A DNA stretch of 64,000 nt from Eukaryota sp. TZLM1-RC (Eukaryota > Protista > Metamonada: BaSk clade): NCBI GenBank assembly GCA_040285825.1, contig JAUPSS010000003.1:1364001-1428000 (forward strand), given 5' to 3'. Made by a program: the position numbers and the translations under genes. The notes beneath the pieces were generated by a model, which ran no database searches, had not been told where the DNA came from, and worked only from the letters and a program-made list of their open reading frames with translations. Positions 49,470 to 62,215 of the stretch are shown one piece after another. Position 1 is the first letter of the stretch; each line of letters opens with the position of its first letter.

Positions 49470-52400
49470 TCATCTCCTCCTTGACTTTTTTGCTTTTGCG
49501 CCTTTCTTTGCGCCTTTTATCAGCCCACTGAACAGATCTTCCTTTTTTGTCTTCTTCTTCAACTGATTAGGTGTAAGCTTTACCACTGAAACCTTATCTA
49601 CACCCACAGCCGAGCCCTTCTTTAAGTTGTCGCCTTCGTCGTTATGTCTTCTTTTTCTGTTGCTTTTGACTTCAGATTCTACCTTGCCAGCTCTAATAAC
49701 AGTAGAAAGATCGGTAGAGTCTTCTTTTTTCTTGTCTGGACGGTCAATAACTACACGATCACGGTCGACTCTCACGTGATCATGATGACCACTTTTGACC
49801 TCCTTTTTTGAACCATTTCCAACGACCTGAACTCCCGTAATCTCCTCTTGTTCAAGCAAGTCAAACGTTCCAGGAAGGATAATTTGTTTAGGACCTTCAT
49901 GCATTTCCTCTTTTTTACTTGATTCCTTCATTTCTTTTGTCTTTCTAATTTGTCTCCTCAAATTCTTGTCGACAGCTTTAATTACCTTTGTAAAAGTGCC
50001 CAATTCAGCAATCAGACAAGCTTCTACACCAAATCTTTTAATGAATTTTTCAATAATAAAACGAATTAACTTGCTTGATTTGCTTGAATACTGATACCAA
50101 TATTGGAAATAAACCAAAACTTCAGGTAATAAAACAGAAGAAATAAGCTTTCTACCCCTATTAAACGATAAAAGCTTCTTAATTAAAACTAAAACACTTC
50201 TAAAGAATTCAAAAGATTTTTCTTCAGAGGTCAAGATACTGCTGATGTAATCACTGATCAAATTGAGTGAATCAGGAGTCAAAACAGAAGAATAATGAGC
50301 TACGAGCGCAGATAGTGCCATTACAGTAGACATTTTGTCTTCAGAATTCAACAATAATGAGCGGATCACATCATCAATTCCATCATTTTGAGCTGAATAA
50401 ATCCCCGCAATCTCAATCAGAACGTCACCTGCAGTTTTTTTGACCTTGGATGACGTGTTACAGAGACAAGAAACAGTATATTTTGCCCAATTACCTAGTA
50501 TGGTGGTATCATTAACAAAATGACATAGTGATTTTAAAAGGCGAAGGTAAGATCTTTTTTCACCTTCCTTGACAGTCAAAGGGTCAATATTGGAGGTCAA
50601 ATTAAAGACAGTTTCCTTGACTTTATTTGACTTCAAAGAGGAAAGGAAACTAGCTAATCGGAACAGTTTGTGGCGTAGTGATGAATCATCAATTGTAATC
50701 AATGACGTGATGCAATTGACAACGACAACTGCAGGTTGCTCAATCAATGATAAATCAGCATCACCTCTAAAGAAACTTGCCAAAGAAAAGACGTGGATCA
50801 AATCAGTGTAAACGTGTAGGTCAAAAAGGTCGTTGGAAGTCATCTTGTTCACGTGATTGATTGATTTTTTGATTGCTTCTGATAAAAAGTTCAAGACACC
50901 ATTGACAGGCGAAACAAAACAGACTGCATACAATGTTTCTAATAACTGTTTTCGAGTCTCACTTTTGAGCTGATTGGAGGTTTGATTGGACTTGGATGAC
51001 GTCATCAAAAGATTGATTAAAGTAACAATGATTTGTTTGCAATTGGGAAGTAATAATTTTTTATATTCCGAGGTGATGACGTGATCTACATTAACCAGCA
51101 TTGACTGCTGAGCTGTCGCTTCGTCATCACTATCATCATCACAGTCAGAATCATCTAATTCATCATCTGTCTTGAAATTTTCATCCTGATTTACTTCAAA
51201 AACTGATTGAAGTGATTCCTTTTCTGAAAAAGTCAAGCAAGATGATGTGATAAGATTGTAAAGAGATTTACAGGCAGGTAATATCATTTCTGTTGAATAG
51301 AAAGAATCCTTTAATTTAAAGCAATTTAATAAAAATTCAAAATAATTATTAATTTGATCTTTAAAGTCTCTACAATACAGACACAAAGAAGGTAAAGTTT
51401 CAATAATTTGAAAGGAAAGTAATTCAAGATCAGCAACTGCCTTCATCATTGGGTTATCACTTTTGACTGAGTTTTTGATTGTTTGAGCACGTGACTTGAT
51501 TGTCATTGATTGAGGGAGTAAATAATCAAAAAAGATTGATAGCTTTGAATTACTTGCACCCTGACCAATGCACCAAACTAACCAGGGCCTGGGGGTCAAA
51601 AGAGGGTCATTTTCAAGAAGATTCAACGGGAAAAGTTCTAAAACACGTTCAACCCCAAAACATTTGATCAAAGAAACCATCGTTGATTTGCCAACATTTA
51701 AAATAGACTCATTAAAAAAATAATCAGTGTTTTTGTCGTGATTATCTTGATTGTTACTATTCTTGGTAACATAAAGATGGGCATCATCTAAGAGTTTCCC
51801 GATGAATTGGGATAATTTTATTAAACAATTTTTATGAGATTCATTACAGATTGAAAATAGTTTACCTGAAATCGATAACAGATTGCTCCAAGCGAGCCGA
51901 GATTTAATCGAAAAACTATTTAATATTAAACTTGAAGTTTTGGTGACACATGTCAGCTCATCTTCATTTGGATTATTCGACAAAAAATTTCCTAATTTGA
52001 CCATTAATGAGTTACTTCTCTTTTGCATGGATAATATTGTTGATCTTGAATTAGAATCACATTGAGAAAGGAAAAGGGCAAGAATTTCAGGAATTTTGGA
52101 AAAAAACTGCTTTGAATGTGATTGATCGTAATCAATCTGATTGATTGCCTTACTGATGAAACTGTAAACAGAACCTAGACACTTTGGTGACGTCACATTT
52201 TGAGCTAGATTAATGAGCTCCCATGTCACCTCAAACGTGATATCTGAAACTACCTGCATTGCTAGTCCAAATGCTTTTATTATATCTTCACTTCCCTCAG
52301 AAGAGACATTCTTAATGAAAGAGAGAAGAGAAGAAGAGGGTTGGGGAGAGTCAAGGGAGAACAAACGGGGAAGAAGAAGTGAAGCACGAGAAGAAATGGT

Positions 52401-52856
52401 ATCAGAAGGGTGAGTTAGAAAGTAGAAAAGGAGGTCAGATAAAGACTTGGGTGATCGTGCAGAGAGAAGGGAAGGGGAAAGATAGGTGAGGAAAGAGACA
52501 GAAGCTGAAATAGCAGCAGGTATAACTGTTTCATCTTCAACAAAGGATTTTAGTATCTCGAGTAGGACGTCCGATGTGAGGATGGATTGTTTGATTAGAA
52601 TAGAGTCTGGTGTGACAGTGACCACGGCAGAAAAGAGGTACAAGATCGAGGAGAGTTTGGAAGTCGAATGAGAGCTTGGATTTTGGAGTAAAGAAAGTAG
52701 AGCTGCAAAGAATGAAGTAGCACTGGGAGGAAGTCCCTGTTCTTTAACCAAGGCTTCGATAGCAGAAAGTACAACAACACCCTCACCAGAATCATCTCTT
52801 GATAGAACATCATAGAAAATCCCATCTAACAATGAATCTAAATCAGTGAGATTCAT
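49470..52856 (-). CDS. RRP12: RRP12-like HEAT/ARM ribosome biogenesis protein
   Basis: VLSAIE......G........FAALLSLL N-terminus; G.E.VL...PLNL.......RPWL and L..F...LLP NUC173-type motifs; K-rich tail GAKKGAKAK. Confidence 0.75.
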   Translation of the reverse strand: MNLTDLDSLLDGIFYDVLSRDDSGEGVVVLSAIEALVKEQGLPPSATSFFAALLSLLQNPSSHSTSKLSSILYLFSAVVTVTPDSILIKQSILTSDVLLEILKSFVEDETVIPAAISASVSFLTYLSPSLLSARSPKSLSDLLFYFLTHPSDTISSRASLLLPRLFSLDSPQPSSSLLSFIKNVSSEGSEDIIKAFGLAMQVVSDITFEVTWELINLAQNVTSPKCLGSVYSFISKAINQIDYDQSHSKQFFSKIPEILALFLSQCDSNSRSTILSMQKRSNSLMVKLGNFLSNNPNEDELTCVTKTSSLILNSFSIKSRLAWSNLLSISGKLFSICNESHKNCLIKLSQFIGKLLDDAHLYVTKNSNNQDNHDKNTDYFFNESILNVGKSTMVSLIKCFGVERVLELFPLNLLENDPLLTPRPWLVWCIGQGASNSKLSIFFDYLLPQSMTIKSRAQTIKNSVKSDNPMMKAVADLELLSFQIIETLPSLCLYCRDFKDQINNYFEFLLNCFKLKDSFYSTEMILPACKSLYNLITSSCLTFSEKESLQSVFEVNQDENFKTDDELDDSDCDDDSDDEATAQQSMLVNVDHVITSEYKKLLLPNCKQIIVTLINLLMTSSKSNQTSNQLKSETRKQLLETLYAVCFVSPVNGVLNFLSEAIKKSINHVNKMTSNDLFDLHVYTDLIHVFSLASFFRGDADLSLIEQPAVVVVNCITSLITIDDSSLRHKLFRLASFLSSLKSNKVKETVFNLTSNIDPLTVKEGEKRSYLRLLKSLCHFVNDTTILGNWAKYTVSCLCNTSSKVKKTAGDVLIEIAGIYSAQNDGIDDVIRSLLLNSEDKMSTVMALSALVAHYSSVLTPDSLNLISDYISSILTSEEKSFEFFRSVLVLIKKLLSFNRGRKLISSVLLPEVLVYFQYWYQYSSKSSKLIRFIIEKFIKRFGVEACLIAELGTFTKVIKAVDKNLRRQIRKTKEMKESSKKEEMHEGPKQIILPGTFDLLEQEEITGVQVVGNGSKKEVKSGHHDHVRVDRDRVVIDRPDKKKEDSTDLSTVIRAGKVESEVKSNRKRRHNDEGDNLKKGSAVGVDKVSVVKLTPNQLKKKTKKEDLFSGLIKGAKKGAKAKKSRRR

Positions 52857-52926
52857 AGTGAGCTTGAAGTTGGAGACAATTGAAATCAGTTCATGGTTTT
52901 CGCTTCCCTTCCACACAACTTATTTG
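52857..52926. promoter_or_regulatory. 70-bp bidirectional promoter region between RRP12 and GPN3
   Basis: Divergent ATGs at 52856 (-) and 52927 (+). Confidence 0.6.
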
Positions 52927-53709
52927 ATGGGAAAAATAGCACAATTTGTCGTTGGTCCAGCTGGTTCTGGTAAGAGTACTTATTGCTGGCAAATGTCAGA
53001 GCACTTCCACACCATTGGGCGTACTGTTCATATAGTTAACTTAGATCCTGCTGCTGAGTATTTACCTTATACACCTTCTTTTGATATCCGTAATCTTATA
53101 TCTTTAGAAGATGCTATGGAGGAAATGGACTTTGGACCAAATGGAGGACTCGTCTTTTGTATGGAGTATTTACTACAGAACATGGACTGGCTGGAGGAAG
53201 AACTCGGTAGCTATGAAGATGATTACCTTCTTCTTGACTGTCCTGGTCAGGTTGAACTATACACAAATGTTCCAATGATGAGACACTTAACAAAAACCTT
53301 TGTGAACTGGGGTTACAATATGGTTGGTATCTATTGTTTGGATTCAAACATAGTCCTAGACCCATGTAGGTTTATTTCGGGTTTTCTCACATGTGTCTCT
53401 ACCATGTATCAATTCAGTCTCCCACATGTCAATGTTCTCACCAAAACTGATTTGATTGCAGACAAGTCAAAGCTGGAAGAACTAGGTCCCAGTAACCCAG
53501 ACCTTTTAGATGACTTGGATAGAATTTCTACAGGTAAATATAGGCAACTCAACAGATGCATTGTTGATGTTTTACAAGAAAACGATGTCGTTAGCTTGTT
53601 ACCTGTCAATTACAATGATGAAGATTCTTTATCTAATTTGCTGTTGCATATTGATTTAGTTTCGCAGTATTTTGATGATGCAGAAGTCAAAGAAAGTTTT
53701 ATAGATTAG
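52927..53709 (+). CDS. GPN3: GPN-loop GTPase 3
   Basis: AQFVVGPAGSGKSTYC, NLDPAAE, GPNGGLVFCMEYL, DDYLLLDCPGQVELYT, PHVNVLTKTD. Confidence 0.92.
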   Translation: MGKIAQFVVGPAGSGKSTYCWQMSEHFHTIGRTVHIVNLDPAAEYLPYTPSFDIRNLISLEDAMEEMDFGPNGGLVFCMEYLLQNMDWLEEELGSYEDDYLLLDCPGQVELYTNVPMMRHLTKTFVNWGYNMVGIYCLDSNIVLDPCRFISGFLTCVSTMYQFSLPHVNVLTKTDLIADKSKLEELGPSNPDLLDDLDRISTGKYRQLNRCIVDVLQENDVVSLLPVNYNDEDSLSNLLLHIDLVSQYFDDAEVKESFID

Positions 53710-53715
53710 TTTAAT

Positions 53716-54648
53716 TTAATCTGTTTTATCTTGCTTAAGTTTTTCCAAATCTAATAATATATTATTTTCAACGGAGTTAAAATCTTCAATCATCATTAGA
53801 TTTGTTTCTGTTAAATATCTATTTTCCTCTTTTAATTTAGCACAGTATTGGTTTAAATATACATTTGCTTCTTTTAGTTTGTTGTTATTTGCCCTACTTA
53901 AATTATAATCATCCATTGTTAAAATCTCACAACTTATCCCAACCTCAGTTACAGATTTTTCAGATATAACCTCATGTCTTTGCTCAAAAGGGGTTAGTTT
54001 GAGGTCAACTGGTAAGTGTGGACTGCTGGCTACAGGGGAAACAATTTGTGTGTTTAGGAGTCTAAACTTAGATCCAGACGATATATTTTGAGAAAGATGG
54101 GCAGTTGAACCATTATGCGTTTTGGGGGTAGCCTGATTCACAAAAGATTGACTTGGAAACGTCAACTGGTGAAGTACGTTGTGAGAGTCCTGATTCTGAC
54201 CAACATGTTGAGCATAGACGAAATCTGTCTTCTCCTCATCGTTGTCAAAGAACCTTATTCTTGCAGATGGATTAAGACTTTCTTGTAAGTCCTGTTCATG
54301 TTGGCTGACACAGTCATCATCTTGTCGTGGTGATGGGATTAGTTCATGTGAGACAGTTTTAAGCAGCTGATCTCCAGATAGATTTGGCCGTTTTCGTTTT
54401 GGCAGGGATCTTGTTAGGGGGTGACTAATCTGAGGTTGTTGACTGTGTGGATTTTGTGTGAATGGTGTTGATCGGCTCAGTGTGAGCAAATCTTTACTAA
54501 TGCCTACACGATTTGAGGAACATGGGATGTGCTGTGAATGTGAAGAAGATGCAAAGAAAGCCTTCTGAGTTGATTCGAGTAGTCTGCGTTTTCGTGCTCT
54601 TATGAAGTCAGTCAATGAAGCTGAGACATACTGGATATCAAACAGCAT
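53716..54648 (-). CDS. hypothetical protein (310 aa, disordered with C-terminal coiled coil)
   Basis: Intact ORF; stop lies 6 bp from the GPN3 stop. Confidence 0.65.
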   Translation of the reverse strand: MLFDIQYVSASLTDFIRARKRRLLESTQKAFFASSSHSQHIPCSSNRVGISKDLLTLSRSTPFTQNPHSQQPQISHPLTRSLPKRKRPNLSGDQLLKTVSHELIPSPRQDDDCVSQHEQDLQESLNPSARIRFFDNDEEKTDFVYAQHVGQNQDSHNVLHQLTFPSQSFVNQATPKTHNGSTAHLSQNISSGSKFRLLNTQIVSPVASSPHLPVDLKLTPFEQRHEVISEKSVTEVGISCEILTMDDYNLSRANNNKLKEANVYLNQYCAKLKEENRYLTETNLMMIEDFNSVENNILLDLEKLKQDKTD

Positions 54649-54944
54649 TTTAATGCTTTGCCGGGAAAATACACATAAAATAGTCCTCCACCTCCATTTC
54701 TATTGGTCTGTCACTAAGACCAACAAATCCAGTCTTTTGAATAGGCCCTTTGCATGAGTTTGCTCAAATTCAACGAACTGCCAATAAGTAGATATGACTA
54801 ACAACATCTAATAGTCATTGTCTATAACATTGTCATACAGAATGATTTTTCATTCATGATTTATAAATATCACAACGTTTATTCTGACACCAAAAAACAA
54901 CGTACTTGCATAAAAAGGTTATTTCCACTAATGTACAAAACAAG

Positions 54945-55301
54945 CTAACTTTGTTCGAACCTCTTACGACGTTTTTCAAGCTTCTCTTCTGTTTGGCCGG
55001 GCAACAATTTGGATTGAGGCTTCTGTTGAGGCTTCTTCACTTTACTAGACTGGCGCTTTCTTGATGTAGGATTGGTTCGCTTTTTTTGTTCAGTAGTGGC
55101 CTGATCAGGAATACCAAATCGCTTAGCTCTGAGAGCAAGTCTCTCGCGATCAACTGCTTTTGCAAAATCCTCCTCTGAGAGCTCTTGGCCAAATTTTTCA
55201 AGACGAGATCGGACTTTGGCCTCTGCATCTGCTTTGAGGGAAGAAGAAGGTATTTCTGATAAAGGTGTGGTATCTGAAGTAGGTTGTTGATTCTCGGACA
55301 T
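54945..55301 (-). CDS. Tho1/SARNP/MOS11-like small RNA-binding protein (no SAP domain seen)
   Basis: Repeated R..RF motifs (RLEKFG, RAKRFGIP, EKLEKRRKRF). Confidence 0.65.
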   Translation of the reverse strand: MSENQQPTSDTTPLSEIPSSSLKADAEAKVRSRLEKFGQELSEEDFAKAVDRERLALRAKRFGIPDQATTEQKKRTNPTSRKRQSSKVKKPQQKPQSKLLPGQTEEKLEKRRKRFEQS

Positions 55302-55340
55302 CAGAAATATTAATAATAGAATTTATAGAAATTCAATACT

Positions 55341-56626
55341 GAGTGGCGTCAAGCAAGGAGATTCATTGGTACCTCTTTTCTTCTGCCTGGAAATTCATTC
55401 AATTTTATTACAAATTCAAGCAATGTTTCCCTCATTAAAAATGATTGCTCACATGGATGGTGTGGTTTCAATAGGCGACTTAACGATAATGAAAAAAGCA
55501 ACTTTATGTTTTAACGAATCATTTAACAAAATTGGTCTTCAACTGAACTTATTTAAATGTGTTTTACTTTCAAGTTCTCCAATTTCAACATTAGTTGACG
55601 GAACTGAAATTCAACCCAAGTTATATTCATCTGATGCAATTGGTGATCTCAGTTCGTTCTTAGGCATTAATGATGAAATCTTCAAACAACTATTTGAAAA
55701 ATTGAATATGATTTCTGGAGAAATTGACCAAATGATGAAATTCGATATACAGAAACATATCATATTTAGCATAATAAGACTCTGTTCTAATTCAAATTTC
55801 AATCATATATTTCAATCTATTAATCTTCTTATCTCTAGACCGGTGGCCCAAATGTTCAATGAATTTTGTGCTAAAGTTTTGTCTCAACTGATAGTGTGTA
55901 AATTGTCCCAAATTCCCACTTATGCACATCTAGGTCCACATTATGGCGGTTCAGGTTGGACTAAGGCCTCAATTCTCACTTCATGTGTTTTTTTTGGTGG
56001 ATAGAGAAATGCAACATTTGAGTTTTCTGAAAGATTTGCAGATTGGAAAGACTTTTTGGTGACAATGCAAAGTTCTACTGTTTTTGCATTAAATGAAGAT
56101 ATTTTATAAATTGATACTGAAAAATGGAATCAATGATTTCCTCAATCATTCAATGACAATATTCCTGAACAAATTCATTTGAATTTAAAATACACACTTC
56201 AAACATTACAAAAACGAATGACGAAAATGTATGAAGATGCTTCTTTAAAACATTTATGCAGCTCTGCTGTTTTAGTTCAAGATCTTCTTTCATTACTATA
56301 AGAAAAAGGTCTGTGCGATAATAAGTCATCAGGTTCATCACTATTTGTCACCATTGTGCCACGAAAGTTTGGGCAATGTGCCTATAATGAAGCTTTTGTA
56401 ACAAAAGAGAAATTATATTTGAATATTCCCATTAATCAATTATTACAAAAACAAGTGTTTGTTCTACTTCATCACAGCTCACTTTACGTCAAGTTCACAA
56501 TTGTCCCAAATTGATAATGTATCGTTCTTCATTACATGATGCTTTTAGAGACACTGTTTTTAATATGGCACGAACTGCAAGAATTTCGTGTATCAAAGAG
56601 CCTCTGCTGAAGGAAACACTGTCATT
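55341..56626 (+). mobile_element. CRE-like family B internal fragment (RT core to Zn knuckle)
   Basis: SGVKQGDSLVPLFF (GV.QGDPL.P) and AHMDG (decayed AY.DD) RT motifs, GLQLNLFKC, YGGSGW; 56500-56626 matches 7950-8080. Confidence 0.85.
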
Positions 56627-57142
56627 CCGGTTTCAATAATTGCTGCAATGATAAAATAAACTTTTTCAAACTAATTCAATGACAGTGCTTCTTAAAGCAA
56701 ATCCTCTTTGACGCGTATTTCTTGCCTAATTTTCTTATCCTATGAAAAACTGTGTCTCCAACATCATTATGTATAAAAGTAGGAATAATTCATAAAAAAT
56801 GATTAAGACCATGGTGAGTTTTGGAGACCAAATAAGTAACAATTAAAGACCAACAAATATTGGTTTCTTTGAATAGTAATTCGATAATCGGAATATTCGA
56901 TTTTAGTTTCACAATTATAGGGAAAGCATAATCAGTGCCGCATAATCCAAGACATGGAAGTGGAATGGATACAACAAGTAATAATGAATCAGCTCAATAA
57001 TAGATATAGATTTTTGTAAAAACAGAGAGTGAAGTCTTCATCTAAAGCAACCAAAGTAAATGTTTCACAGCGCTGGATTTGTATTTATCGAAATCATATA
57101 TTGCATTTAATTAAAACTGTTTTAAAATAATGTTAAACCTAG

Positions 57143-57664
57143 TCAACCTAGAGAATATTTATTTCGTTGTAAAACATCAGCTATGTCAGTTCTACAAATA
57201 GGACATCGAGATGAAAACGAAAGAGCCTTCGAAATACACTTAAAGTGAAAAACATGACCAAAATCACATGGGAGGATTAAAAGCTTTTGCTTCGCGTTGA
57301 AATGATCTAAACAGATACAACAAGCTTCACCATTGGCATCACTTGCCAGAAAGGTTGGAAGAGTAGAAATTTCTTTTGGTGTTAATGTAGTCTGCGTCGT
57401 ATCAAGACTACGTAAGATTTCATAATCATTTGGACTAATTTCTCTCATTCCTAGGTACATGTGCACATGGAGAGGCAAAGCATCACTAGAAAACCCACTA
57501 GAAGATCTACACTTACATGACAAATAGAGTACTGCTACTAAAAGACAAAACACAATGTTAAATAATAAAAACAGGTGAATGGGATTCACATTAACTCTTG
57601 TTATCTCTTGTGCTATGGTAAGCACAACAGAAGTTAAACTGGTAAGAACGAAAGCACAGGACAT
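57143..57664 (-). CDS. transmembrane RING-H2 E3 ubiquitin ligase
   Basis: Signal plus TM; DYEILRSLD; CCICLDHF......ILPCDFGHVFHFKCI.......RCPICR. Confidence 0.88.
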   Translation of the reverse strand: MSCAFVLTSLTSVVLTIAQEITRVNVNPIHLFLLFNIVFCLLVAVLYLSCKCRSSSGFSSDALPLHVHMYLGMREISPNDYEILRSLDTTQTTLTPKEISTLPTFLASDANGEACCICLDHFNAKQKLLILPCDFGHVFHFKCISKALSFSSRCPICRTDIADVLQRNKYSLG

Positions 57665-58931: not shown

Positions 58932-61900
58932 TTACCTCCTTTTCATCTTTCCTGGACTCTGTTCTATTGCTCTCTGAACCCCACTTTGAACGAAAGGACT
59001 ATCATTGCTGGTCTGTCCAGGGGAAACTGCTGTGGGAGAATCATAATCTTCATCTGTAAGTTCTGAATCAGTCAGTCCTTCTCCCACTGAAACAGACACT
59101 TCTGAAGAATGAACATCATCAGAAGATTCATATAGTTTGGTGACATTTTGCTCTTCATCCACATCAAACTCACTACAATTCCAAACCCTGTGCCAATCTC
59201 TGTTTCTTTTGACCAAAGAACGAAGAACTGGATGGTATGGGGGTAACCGTGAGGGATCATCGACTAAACGATCAAAGTTCTTGCTTCTAGGAACATATTC
59301 AAAAAGATTATAAAACAACGCAACAACTCTAAATGCTAAGAGCAACAATCTGTATAAAGGGAAAATAATGATAACTAACAATGGAGCACGAAGATCACGT
59401 CGACGGCGCAGAGTCCAGAAGTTGAAGATGAAAAACAAGCAATATTGAATTAGTACAACTCTAGCTGCAATAACTATAAGACTTGGAACATCATTGAGAT
59501 AAACAAAGTATATCATAACCAGAATTCGAAGATAGTCTTGAATGATTGTCAGAATTTCATGTAAATAGTAGAATTTCAAAACAATAGTTTTCTTACTCCA
59601 ATAAAACAACAAATGTTGAAGATACTTGAACAAGAAGCGATGGGCAGTAACGTCCCAAGACTTGATCCTCTGAGCCAATAAGGACTTTTCATCAATAGAA
59701 ACATCATTGAAGAGGTCTTCGCCTGGATGACAAAGGTCTTCAGGCACTGAGGTGAGCACGGGGGTGTTACCATAAGCTAACAACATTTGCATATCACCCT
59801 TTTCCTTTGTCATTTCTCTTAAAATTAACCCCATTTGGGCATCTTCTCCATTAAACACTGTGTTATGCCGTTCCATGACCTCAACCATAACATCGCGTTT
59901 CCATATTGACACAGCCCCATGAGGATAATTTGCGGTAGACCAGGAAGACTGGAAGAGCTTGGAGAAACCAGCAAGAAGATACTCAACATCTTGCATCCAA
60001 ACGAGAAGCGAACGTCTTCTAAATCCTTTGCTGTCTTTATTAGGTGCTGTTCTGATAATTGGAACAGCCCCCGCTACAGACTTGTTGCTAAGTTTGTTGA
60101 TCTGGAAAGACATATCAGGACTAGGGTTAAAGAAAATTAGAAAGAGACATACGGTAGAATGATATCATCATCCATAATAACCACTGTATCAATATTGGGA
60201 GGGAGCCAGTACTTTGCCGTCCAAAGGAGAGCTAGTGTTTTATTACCTACAGGGACATAGACATAGGAAATCTTTCTTCCCCATTGAGCCACTTTGGAGA
60301 CAACATCAATAGTACGGTCTCCAGCAGCAGGAGCGGCTCCTCTAGAATTGTGACAAACAAAGACTTGACCATCTGGAACTAGCATTGAGGCCATCTTGAG
60401 AGTTTTTTCAAAACCTTGTTCCTTTTCCTGCTGAATTCTTGTCAAGTTCTCTCTTGTCAGATTGGCAGTCCCCATGATGTTATTCTGAGCTTTGGAAGCT
60501 ACAGCATCGGGATGTTGACCAGCAGATGCATGAGAAGCTATCAGTATAGCCACATTACGATGGTTCCTTGGAAGAGTTCGTACAGATGGCCATGACTGAG
60601 TGAACAGAGCAGCACCCAGCAAGCAATATTCAAGACCCAAAATGATGGCAGAGAGTGTGAAGGAATCCAGCCTGTGGAACCATTTATTAGCTAGAATATA
60701 ATCCTTGAAAAACCACACCATTGCAATGACAGCAGCAAAAGCAAGGCCAATCAGGAAAGTCGTTTCAGCCTTGGATCGCTTTGTCTTTTGGGAAAACTTT
60801 GAGGATTCATCAAAAGAACGGAGCATGGCGACCCATTCTGCTTCTGAATCCTGCATGGATTTGTTCAGCTTCTTCTTCATTAAATCCTCATTGACTTCCT
60901 CATCAGAAGCAAAGTTCTCTTCTGGATTCCTATGAATTGTTTCCATCATTTCTTTAAGCTTTTCTGTATCTCGGTGTTTCTTGTCAAAACGTTCAGGGGG
61001 GTCAAACAATTCTTCTTCAAGAGTTCCCTTGGCTACCTTTCCTTTAGCATAGATAGATGGATCCTTCACATACTTGGCTACCTTACGTTTGTCCACTGCT
61101 TCCCAAACCAGAGCAGCAGATAAGCAAAGAATGAACATGGCAAGTAAAAATGAATCAATAACTGTCCAATGGATTTCTCTGACATCAAACGCTAAATAGT
61201 TGATGTCAATGTACTTTAATGAAGTGTAGGATTCAATCTTGATAACCAATTCCATATCAGTAAAAGTGGTTTCTTCGACAAAACAGCTGACTCTGAGGGG
61301 TGACTCACCGGTGTCAAATCCAGAAACTGAGAGAAAGATCCATGGAATTCGTAGAAAATCTCTTGAGAAAGGAACGGTTACCTTGTGGGTTTTGAACATA
61401 TCAGAGGGCAAATCCAGCTGCCAGTGAGGGGTTTCATCTATTCCAAGGGTCAAAAGTTCTGTTTCATAGTGGATATTATCAATGTTATCCATGGCAAAGT
61501 TGAGGGACGAAAGTCGGAGACTATCGAGTCGCCCATCATCCCAAGTTGAAATAGTAGATTGGAAGCCTCCAGGACTGACTTCCCATGGCCAAAAAGCGAG
61601 AATGTTGGACCTTGATTCACCAAAGTCAACACCAGAAAGTGAGAGAAGTGTAGTCGGTTGAGCATCTAGGGGATCGAAGCGATGTTCTAAGGAATAAGAG
61701 CGTTCACCAACATCTTGAGCGTTTAAATTCCAATTAGGAGAGTAGGAAGAACCAGTACCAAAAAGAGGACTACGGAAGCCCTTGACAATGTTGTTTGATG
61801 AGCATTGAAGTTCAACAGCAAGCCAGTTGATCCTAACAAAACGAATGACTGAGTCATCCCAAGTGGTAACACGAAGGGCAAATTGATAAGGTCCTACATC

Positions 61901-62215
61901 AACTACCTCAACATCGATGCGAGGAGGGTTGACAGGGGAGTCGATTCCAACAATTGAAACTGTGATTTCTGGAGGTTCATAAAACCTATGATCCAATTCT
62001 ATTATTTCAGTATACGAGCGCATTCCTGTTCCCCAGTTGAGGACAAAGTTAGGTAATTGCTCACCAATGACTAACTCACCATTCTGCATCTCCACATAGG
62101 GTACACAAACAAAGCGGTTAATAAAGTCAGACACCGCCGGAGGGGGTGTGATAAAAACGAAGAGCATGACAAGAACAACGATGACCGCATACACCAATGA
62201 TGAGAATCTACCCAT
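58932..62215 (-). CDS. triple H-type lectin fused to a processive GT2 glycosyltransferase; 2 exons (62215-60153, 60120-58932), 1083 aa
   Basis: N-terminal signal/anchor; three H-lectin repeats (F...P.......G.D......R.......TWDD......W.A); TMs; GT2 motifs GNKTLAL, VVIMDDD, QDVEY, HGAVSIWK, GEDAQMG, QRIKSW; C-terminal TMs. Confidence 0.88.
60121..60152 (-). other. 32-nt spliceosomal intron in the GT2 gene
   Basis: GTATGTCTCTTTCTAATTTTCTTTAACCCTAG; joins DDDIILP|PDMSF in frame. Confidence 0.92.

Follow-up and report, generated by a model that had tools for sequence, protein, structure and literature searches.

Skoliomonas is a flagellate and a relative of Giardia, and one of its genes raises the question of whether a polysaccharide synthase can carry, at the opposite face of the membrane, its own lectin for the polymer it makes. 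The gene, P9112_004692, lies in a stretch of 64,000 nucleotides (the window, to which all coordinates below refer) from isolate TZLM1-RC, the type isolate of the anaerobic soda-lake metamonad Skoliomonas litria (PMC11603281). It occupies positions 62215-58932 on the minus strand and comprises two exons of 2063 and 1189 nt around a single 32-nt intron, giving 1084 codons (1083 amino acids and the stop) with no internal stop. An earlier note on this DNA had obtained a 1083-aa reading frame by removing a 32-nt intron, and the independent NCBI model (P0001, 1083 aa) agrees with it at 100% over both exons. The features are as follows, with residue numbers in parentheses.

60153..62215, minus strand: exon 1 (residues 1-688), running from the signal anchor through three H-lectin repeats and TM1-TM3 to the DxD motif inside the GT2 domain
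62150..62206, minus strand: TM0 (4-22), probable uncleaved signal anchor
61805..62095, minus strand: H-type lectin repeat 1 (about 41-137), retaining Asp92, Arg99 and Trp119 (equivalent to discoidin I W235)
61490..61777, minus strand: H-type lectin repeat 2 (about 147-242), retaining Asp197 and Trp225
61178..61474, minus strand: H-type lectin repeat 3 (about 248-346), retaining Asp301 and Arg308, without the Trp
61097..61168, minus strand: TM1 (about 350-373), predicted to bring the chain back to the cytosol, lysine-rich past the helix
60764..61096, minus strand: charged linker, predicted cytosolic (about 374-484)
60596..60763, minus strand: TM2-TM3 hairpin (485-540), preceding GT2
59574..60559, minus strand: GT2 domain (about 553-870, across the intron), with His622, GNKT 657, DDD 682, QDVEY 731, YPHGA 753, GED 779 and QRIKSW 838
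60121..60152, minus strand: intron, 32 nt, GT-AG, phase 2, junction identical in the NCBI model
58932..60120, minus strand: exon 2 (689-1083), with the remaining GT2 domain, the C-terminal membrane helices and the acidic tail
59289..59564, minus strand: membrane and amphipathic helices at the C-terminus (about 874-965), which presumably form the polymer channel with TM2-3
58932..59186, minus strand: acidic Ser-rich tail with a terminal KxKxx di-lysine, a possible COPI retrieval signal

Since exon 1 alone carries the lectins and the GT2 domain as far as its DxD motif, the fusion is independent of the intron, and the claim that both parts share one reading frame is borne out by the counterpart gene of Barthelona PCE, a single intronless ORF. 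A chimera of assembly or gene modelling could be suspected from the small indel errors in these assemblies (seen in the ortholog of Skoliomonas GEM-RC) and from the ortholog of isolate TZLM3-RCL, which is present as two pieces. Set against this are the exon common to lectin and GT2 and the recurrence of the fusion in about ten genes from four genomes, including the one without introns. The chance of a chimera is thereby close to nil, the explanation is effectively refuted, and the lectin-GT2 fusion in P9112_004692 is real. The genes downstream (window 49470-57664) encode a RING-H2 membrane protein, a Tho1/MOS11-like protein, a GPN-family GTPase and RRP12; these neighbours are unrelated housekeeping genes, and a search for synteny of them with other genomes returned none.

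Pfam H_lectin (PF09458) matched the protein in three stretches with 81 bits overall (E 1e-23). Taken singly, and with the cut-off at 24 bits, repeats 1, 2 and 3 scored 39, 20 and 36, so that repeat 2 alone is sub-threshold; the three H-lectin-like repeats of the earlier note are recovered by the whole-protein match and, individually, by repeats 1 and 3. PDB matches of the lectin profile were HPA, HAA, the discoidins and SLL-2. The module was modelled with AlphaFold2 over 321 residues using an 11-row homolog alignment (a single-sequence run gave pLDDT 40), and the predicted structure is a six-stranded beta-sandwich repeated in a compact pseudo-trimer (pLDDT 88, pTM 0.87), values which over this length indicate that the three lectin domains pack as one unit. 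One modelled repeat superimposed on discoidin I with an rmsd of 1.8 over 95 residues and on HPA with 2.4 over 90 residues. The modelled whole module aligned with single-chain three-fold beta-sandwich trimers, namely the PCSK9 C-terminal domain and single-chain C1q (Z 7-9), a likeness of the model that is one of common arrangement and not of homology. The single-chain three-fold pseudo-trimer postulated earlier is thus supported as a prediction. The module also aligned with ESM Atlas models of fungal triple-H-lectin proteins (TM 0.76-0.77 over about 280 residues), and for this reason the single-chain triple-H-lectin module is not in itself unique. These fungal proteins, which occur alone or with astacin/M10 peptidases and are predicted to form the same pseudo-trimer, have no glycosyltransferase fused to them and are without experimental characterisation (PMC8227253).

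H-lectin pockets sit between adjacent domains of the trimer, and three tandem repeats can therefore form sites within one chain; the discoidin sugar site requires W235 and Y241, and ligands other than GalNAc are also bound by H-lectins (10.64898/2026.06.18.733164). W235 aligns with W119 in repeat 1 and W225 in repeat 2, and the second pocket aromatic, discoidin Tyr241, is missing from all three repeats. The equivalent of HPA Asp55 is present in every repeat and that of Arg63 in repeats 1 and 3, and we take both to be pocket residues; the tally is thus Asp in three of three, Arg in repeats 1 and 3, Trp in repeats 1 and 2, and Tyr in none. Judged by its residues, the pocket appears partly intact, with a specificity that is not readable from sequence. 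Cys37 and Cys138, which flank repeat 1 and are invariant across ten homologs, likely form a disulfide, and this would fit a lumenal placement.

Hydrophobic segments were found at approximately residues 4-22, 350-373, 485-503, 519-540 and 877-965, and hydropathy is consistent with two TMs before GT2 and two or three after it, much as the earlier description of a signal/anchor with TMs on both sides of GT2 had it. The order TM0, lectins, TM1, charged loop, TM2, TM3 and GT2 would place lectin and GT2 on opposite sides of the membrane, and Lys/Arg are enriched past TM1 and ahead of TM2. Paralogs of P9112_004692 with a kinesin head, which was confirmed on P9112_009699 and RCL1_001272, share the core TM0 - 3 x H-lectin - TM - GT2. 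As the same helix is internal in these proteins, TM0 is probably an uncleaved anchor; as the kinesin motor that precedes it is cytosolic, the lectin should be lumenal. The TM order, the positive-inside charge, the Cys pair and the paralog kinesin head thus all point to a lumenal lectin opposite a cytosolic GT2 domain, as had been proposed. The C-terminus (window 58935-58949) reads KxKxx, and that of the GEM-RC ortholog KKxx, possibly for COPI retrieval to the ER, and di-lysine endings occur in these two proteins versus 3 of 139 other hits.

The motifs DDD, QDVEY, GED and QRIKSW were located where the earlier note had put them. The DDD of P9112_004692 is the DxD motif, and His622 stands where the D,D,D,QxxRW signature has its first Asp, the same replacement being found throughout the lectin-bearing clade. 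The second and third Asp, Q, R and W of the signature are present and nearly invariant, with a spacing between Q and W that is one residue longer family-wide. The description of QRIKSW as a variant of QxxRW holds, but the variant is not specific to this gene: QRxxSW marks a whole GT2 family. Asp781, in GED, is the likely catalytic base. Against PF13641 the protein scored 21 bits, below the cut-off of 27 when taken alone; the Barthelona counterpart is above the cut-off and 50 of 58 sampled homologs match, so the GT2 assignment rests on the homologs. An NCBIfam scan of P9112_004692 returned nothing.

A profile search with the GT part gave 517 clusters from protists, giant viruses and Legionellales, and the QRxxSW GT2 family is thus wide; it is uncharacterised. 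The best real PDB match of the family profile was the chitin synthase PsChs1 of Phytophthora sojae (PDB 7WJM; E 3e-6); matches to gp120 and MntH were rejected as composition noise. With the channel-entrance and catalytic motifs of PsChs1 taken from PMC9556331, the counterparts in P9112_004692 are GNKT for KASKL, DDD for DVGT, QDVEY for QHFEY, YPHGA for VLPGA, GED for EDR and QRIKSW for QRKRW, and these are nearly invariant in 136 homologs, the extra residue of QRxxSW included. The two enzymes, both GT2 with a GT-A fold, also have amphipathic helices and C-terminal TMs in common; they differ in that P9112_004692 has HNS for DGR, lacks the Arg of EDR and carries a lumenal lectin, which PsChs1 does not have. 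In the chitin-synthase motif test it showed GED-A instead of EDR and QRIKSW instead of QRRRW/QRKRW, and the SWG motif (after IF3), looked for past the GT domain, was absent. By motif, therefore, it would be classed as processive-beta-synthase-like and not as a chitin synthase. The small-channel processive GT2s PgaC/IcaA, NodC and hyaluronan synthase resemble it, as read from hydropathy, in having two TMs before GT2 and a few after, and have no fused product-side lectin. Family members match the PgaC/IcaA and NodC profiles, all below the cut-offs, and these weak matches to GT2s of GlcNAc polymers incline us towards a HexNAc donor.

Among the best 150 of the 517 clusters, lectin-bearing hits came only from S. 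litria, Skoliomonas GEM-RC, TZLM3-RCL and Barthelona PCE; 147 flanking segments from the remaining top hits of that set yielded no H-lectin, and more than 130 homologs are without lectin. The cross-eukaryote search suggested earlier thus confines the architecture, within these 150, to Skoliomonas and Barthelona, where it is conserved BaSk-wide. The claim of novelty stands in that no characterised precedent was found; it does not stand as a one-off, since the architecture forms a paralog family in both genera. Word searches with P9112_004692 returned Skoliomonas proteins only, and with the lectin alignment nothing, blanks that are attributable to the low sensitivity of the method; metagenome scans gave no close relative. 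Lectin-less relatives were found in BaSk, Carpediemonas, Phalansterium, a chytrid, a giant-virus MAG and Legionellales/Coxiellaceae MAGs, as well as in GCA_003568945 and GCA_024181965, presumably Kipferlia and Aduncisulcus.

QRxxSW GT2s were seen in the giant-virus MAG and in Legionellales/Coxiellaceae and Bdellovibrionia MAGs (L012 2731-4674; L013 3457-7457; L015-L023), at one of these loci as a tandem pair adjoining a kinase gene, and the gene neighbours of the bacterial homologs held no sugar-pathway clue. Five lectin-less paralogs from BaSk and unassigned sources (P0014, P0015, P0016, P0020 and P0023) are 2200-3200 aa long, with N-terminal parts of 1400-2200 aa that have no Pfam match. Two lectin-GT2 paralogs, P0006 (1-500) and P0010 (1-480), have an N-terminal extension with a signal-like helix, several TMs and no Pfam domain. 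RCL1_008408 and the preceding 812-aa gene (L003 3552-6919) together make up a single lectin-GT2 paralog, in which several short introns are missing from the annotation. In the GEM-RC ortholog (L004 8770-8930), the model contains an artificial intron that skips two apparent 1-nt indels, likely assembly errors, and the last TM helices are garbled.

A tree was computed without fragments of fewer than 230 profile columns and with a midpoint root only. The lectin-bearing GT2s formed one branch (SH-aLRT 99), within which the kinesin-headed and other extended paralogs made up a subclade (90); P9112_004692, its GEM-RC ortholog and Barthelona branch outside the headed subclade, in a fork order that is not resolved. 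The headless P9112_004692 is thus probably the ancestral type, subject to the root. It shares core and clade with the kinesin-headed Skoliomonas paralogs, and differs from them in lacking a cytosolic head and in having kept the pocket residues. Repeat-1 Asp and Trp occur together only in headless genes, Barthelona among them; the headed paralogs have lost the pocket residues and retained the three-repeat fold and the Cys pair, which indicates that a classic sugar site is not needed for the module to persist. Between Skoliomonas and Barthelona, identity is 23% in the lectin and 51% in GT2, yet repeat-1 Asp, Trp and the LNxGxGxR loop are conserved, and their retention at 23% identity suggests that selection has maintained a sugar site in this orthogroup. 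P9112_004692 keeps the pocket residues best among the Skoliomonas paralogs examined; having no large cytosolic head as well, it is the best first choice among them for expression.

Both parts have close parallels. HPA, discoidin I/II and SLL-2 have the same fold and some of the same pocket residues (Asp, Arg, Trp), and differ as soluble homotrimers from the three diverged repeats, without the pocket Tyr, on one membrane-tethered chain. BcsA-BcsB, tunicate CesA-GH6 and bacterial deacetylase-GT2 fusions, one of which was found here, are synthases paired with a product-side carbohydrate domain, and ppGalNAc-Ts carry a ricin lectin on the catalytic side. The logic of a transferase with a glycan-handling module is the same in all four, which use other folds, and BcsB is a separate subunit, unlike the fused lectin here. 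A literature search, with subscription journals mostly beyond its reach, found no lectin-GT2 fusion, and the architecture is apparently undescribed, built from two known parts. The arrangement of a polysaccharide synthase with its own product-side lectin trimer, absent from the literature found, would offer a single-gene system in which to study the capture and organisation of a nascent polymer once it has crossed the membrane, and it gives an entry to the large QRxxSW family of protists, giant viruses and amoeba-associated bacteria.

The reading that we favour, at somewhat better than even chances on sequence and model, is that of a processive synthase of a beta-HexNAc polymer with a product-side lectin trimer. 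P9112_004692 would be an inverting GT2 enzyme that makes polysaccharide processively in a membrane of the secretory pathway. Its cytosolic GT2 domain would take a UDP-sugar, most likely UDP-HexNAc, and extend a beta-linked chain with Asp781 as base, and the growing chain would pass through the enzyme's own TM channel to the lumen. There the disulfide-closed single-chain H-lectin trimer would bind a glycan, in the simplest case the chain as it emerges or the primer of that chain, and the bound chain could be held, bundled or positioned to build a cyst wall or surface coat. GalNAc in particular as the sugar is possible but on balance rather unlikely. The missing pocket Tyr, the His in place of the first Asp, the QxxRW motif longer by one residue and the absent SWG count against the favoured reading as a whole, and so do the pocket residues lost from the headed paralogs, the more than 130 homologs that do without a lectin and the fact that reports of cysts do not include S. 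litria (PMC11603281).

The strongest competitor, a minority view that deserves real weight, keeps the processive synthase and has the lectin bind another glycan or a glycoprotein, for sorting or for anchoring to a wall scaffold, or serve as a structural or oligomerisation spacer. It draws on the kinesin-headed and other paralogs that keep fold and Cys pair without the pocket residues, on the divergence of the lectin (23% identity against 51% in GT2) between Skoliomonas and Barthelona, and on the mismatch between the GlcNAc polymers made by the closest GT2 relatives and the preference of H-lectins for Gal/GalNAc. The kept repeat-1 Asp, Trp and LNxGxGxR, suggestive of a selected sugar site, oppose it weakly, since such a site would fit any glycan. 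A non-processive or short-chain GT2 of the ER or early Golgi, making a glycolipid or oligosaccharide (cf. glucosylceramide synthase, NodC) with the lectin holding acceptor or product, is unlikely. GT2 is surrounded by just four or five TM helices, its signature lacks the first Asp and has an altered QxxRW, 6 of 58 members weakly match Glyco_transf_21, and the di-lysine ends set this protein and its GEM-RC ortholog apart from nearly all other hits (3 of 139); however, the residues lining the channel entrance of chitin synthases (E/Y, R/W and those of the gate loop) have been kept, and a cytosolic active site with a lumenal lectin is most sensible if the product crosses the membrane. That the protein is a divergent true chitin synthase is more improbable still. 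PsChs1 is the best PDB match and 4 of 58 members weakly match Chitin_synth_2, whereas P9112_004692 itself has no chitin-synthase Pfam match, reads ED-A for EDR, QRIKSW for QRRRW and His for the gate Pro, and lacks SWG.

[quoted passage not shown] Free-living relatives of Giardia have QRxxSW members, and the fornicate branch makes the family a candidate for the Giardia cyst wall synthase; by analogy, a metamonad origin, use of a cytosolic UDP-sugar and polymer synthesis in vesicles would be common to P9112_004692 and the Giardia enzyme. No Giardia protein was present among about 40 organism-assigned family hits. We consider it doubtful, though worth stating, that P9112_004692 is the ancestral form of a BaSk wall synthase making a beta-GalNAc polymer which its own lectin trimer grips, with the lectin-less, Carpediemonas-like fornicate cousins marking the QRxxSW GT2s as the home of the Giardia cyst wall synthase.

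Cysts have been reported only for isolate TZLM3-RCL and not for S. litria (PMC11603281), and it is in TZLM3-RCL (contig JAUPST010000001.1) that the ortholog lies in two pieces, about 16 kb apart on the same strand with the C-terminal piece first. The split is inside the GT2 domain, between RCL1_004512 and RCL1_003599, and both pieces are well conserved (L001 6001-8468, L002 6001-7102); the N-piece has a stop ten codons past the GED helix, and the ATG of the C-piece is in register with an internal Met. Trans-splicing of the pieces was considered and found no support: splice signals are absent at the simplest break, and the best complementary stretch, 13 nt, was reached in 4 of 200 shuffles. The split may reflect mis-assembly, a block swap or gene fission, and is evidence neither for nor against a role in cysts; other intact paralogs are present in TZLM3. 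Three telomere-like CCCTAA units lie 180 nt past the N-piece.
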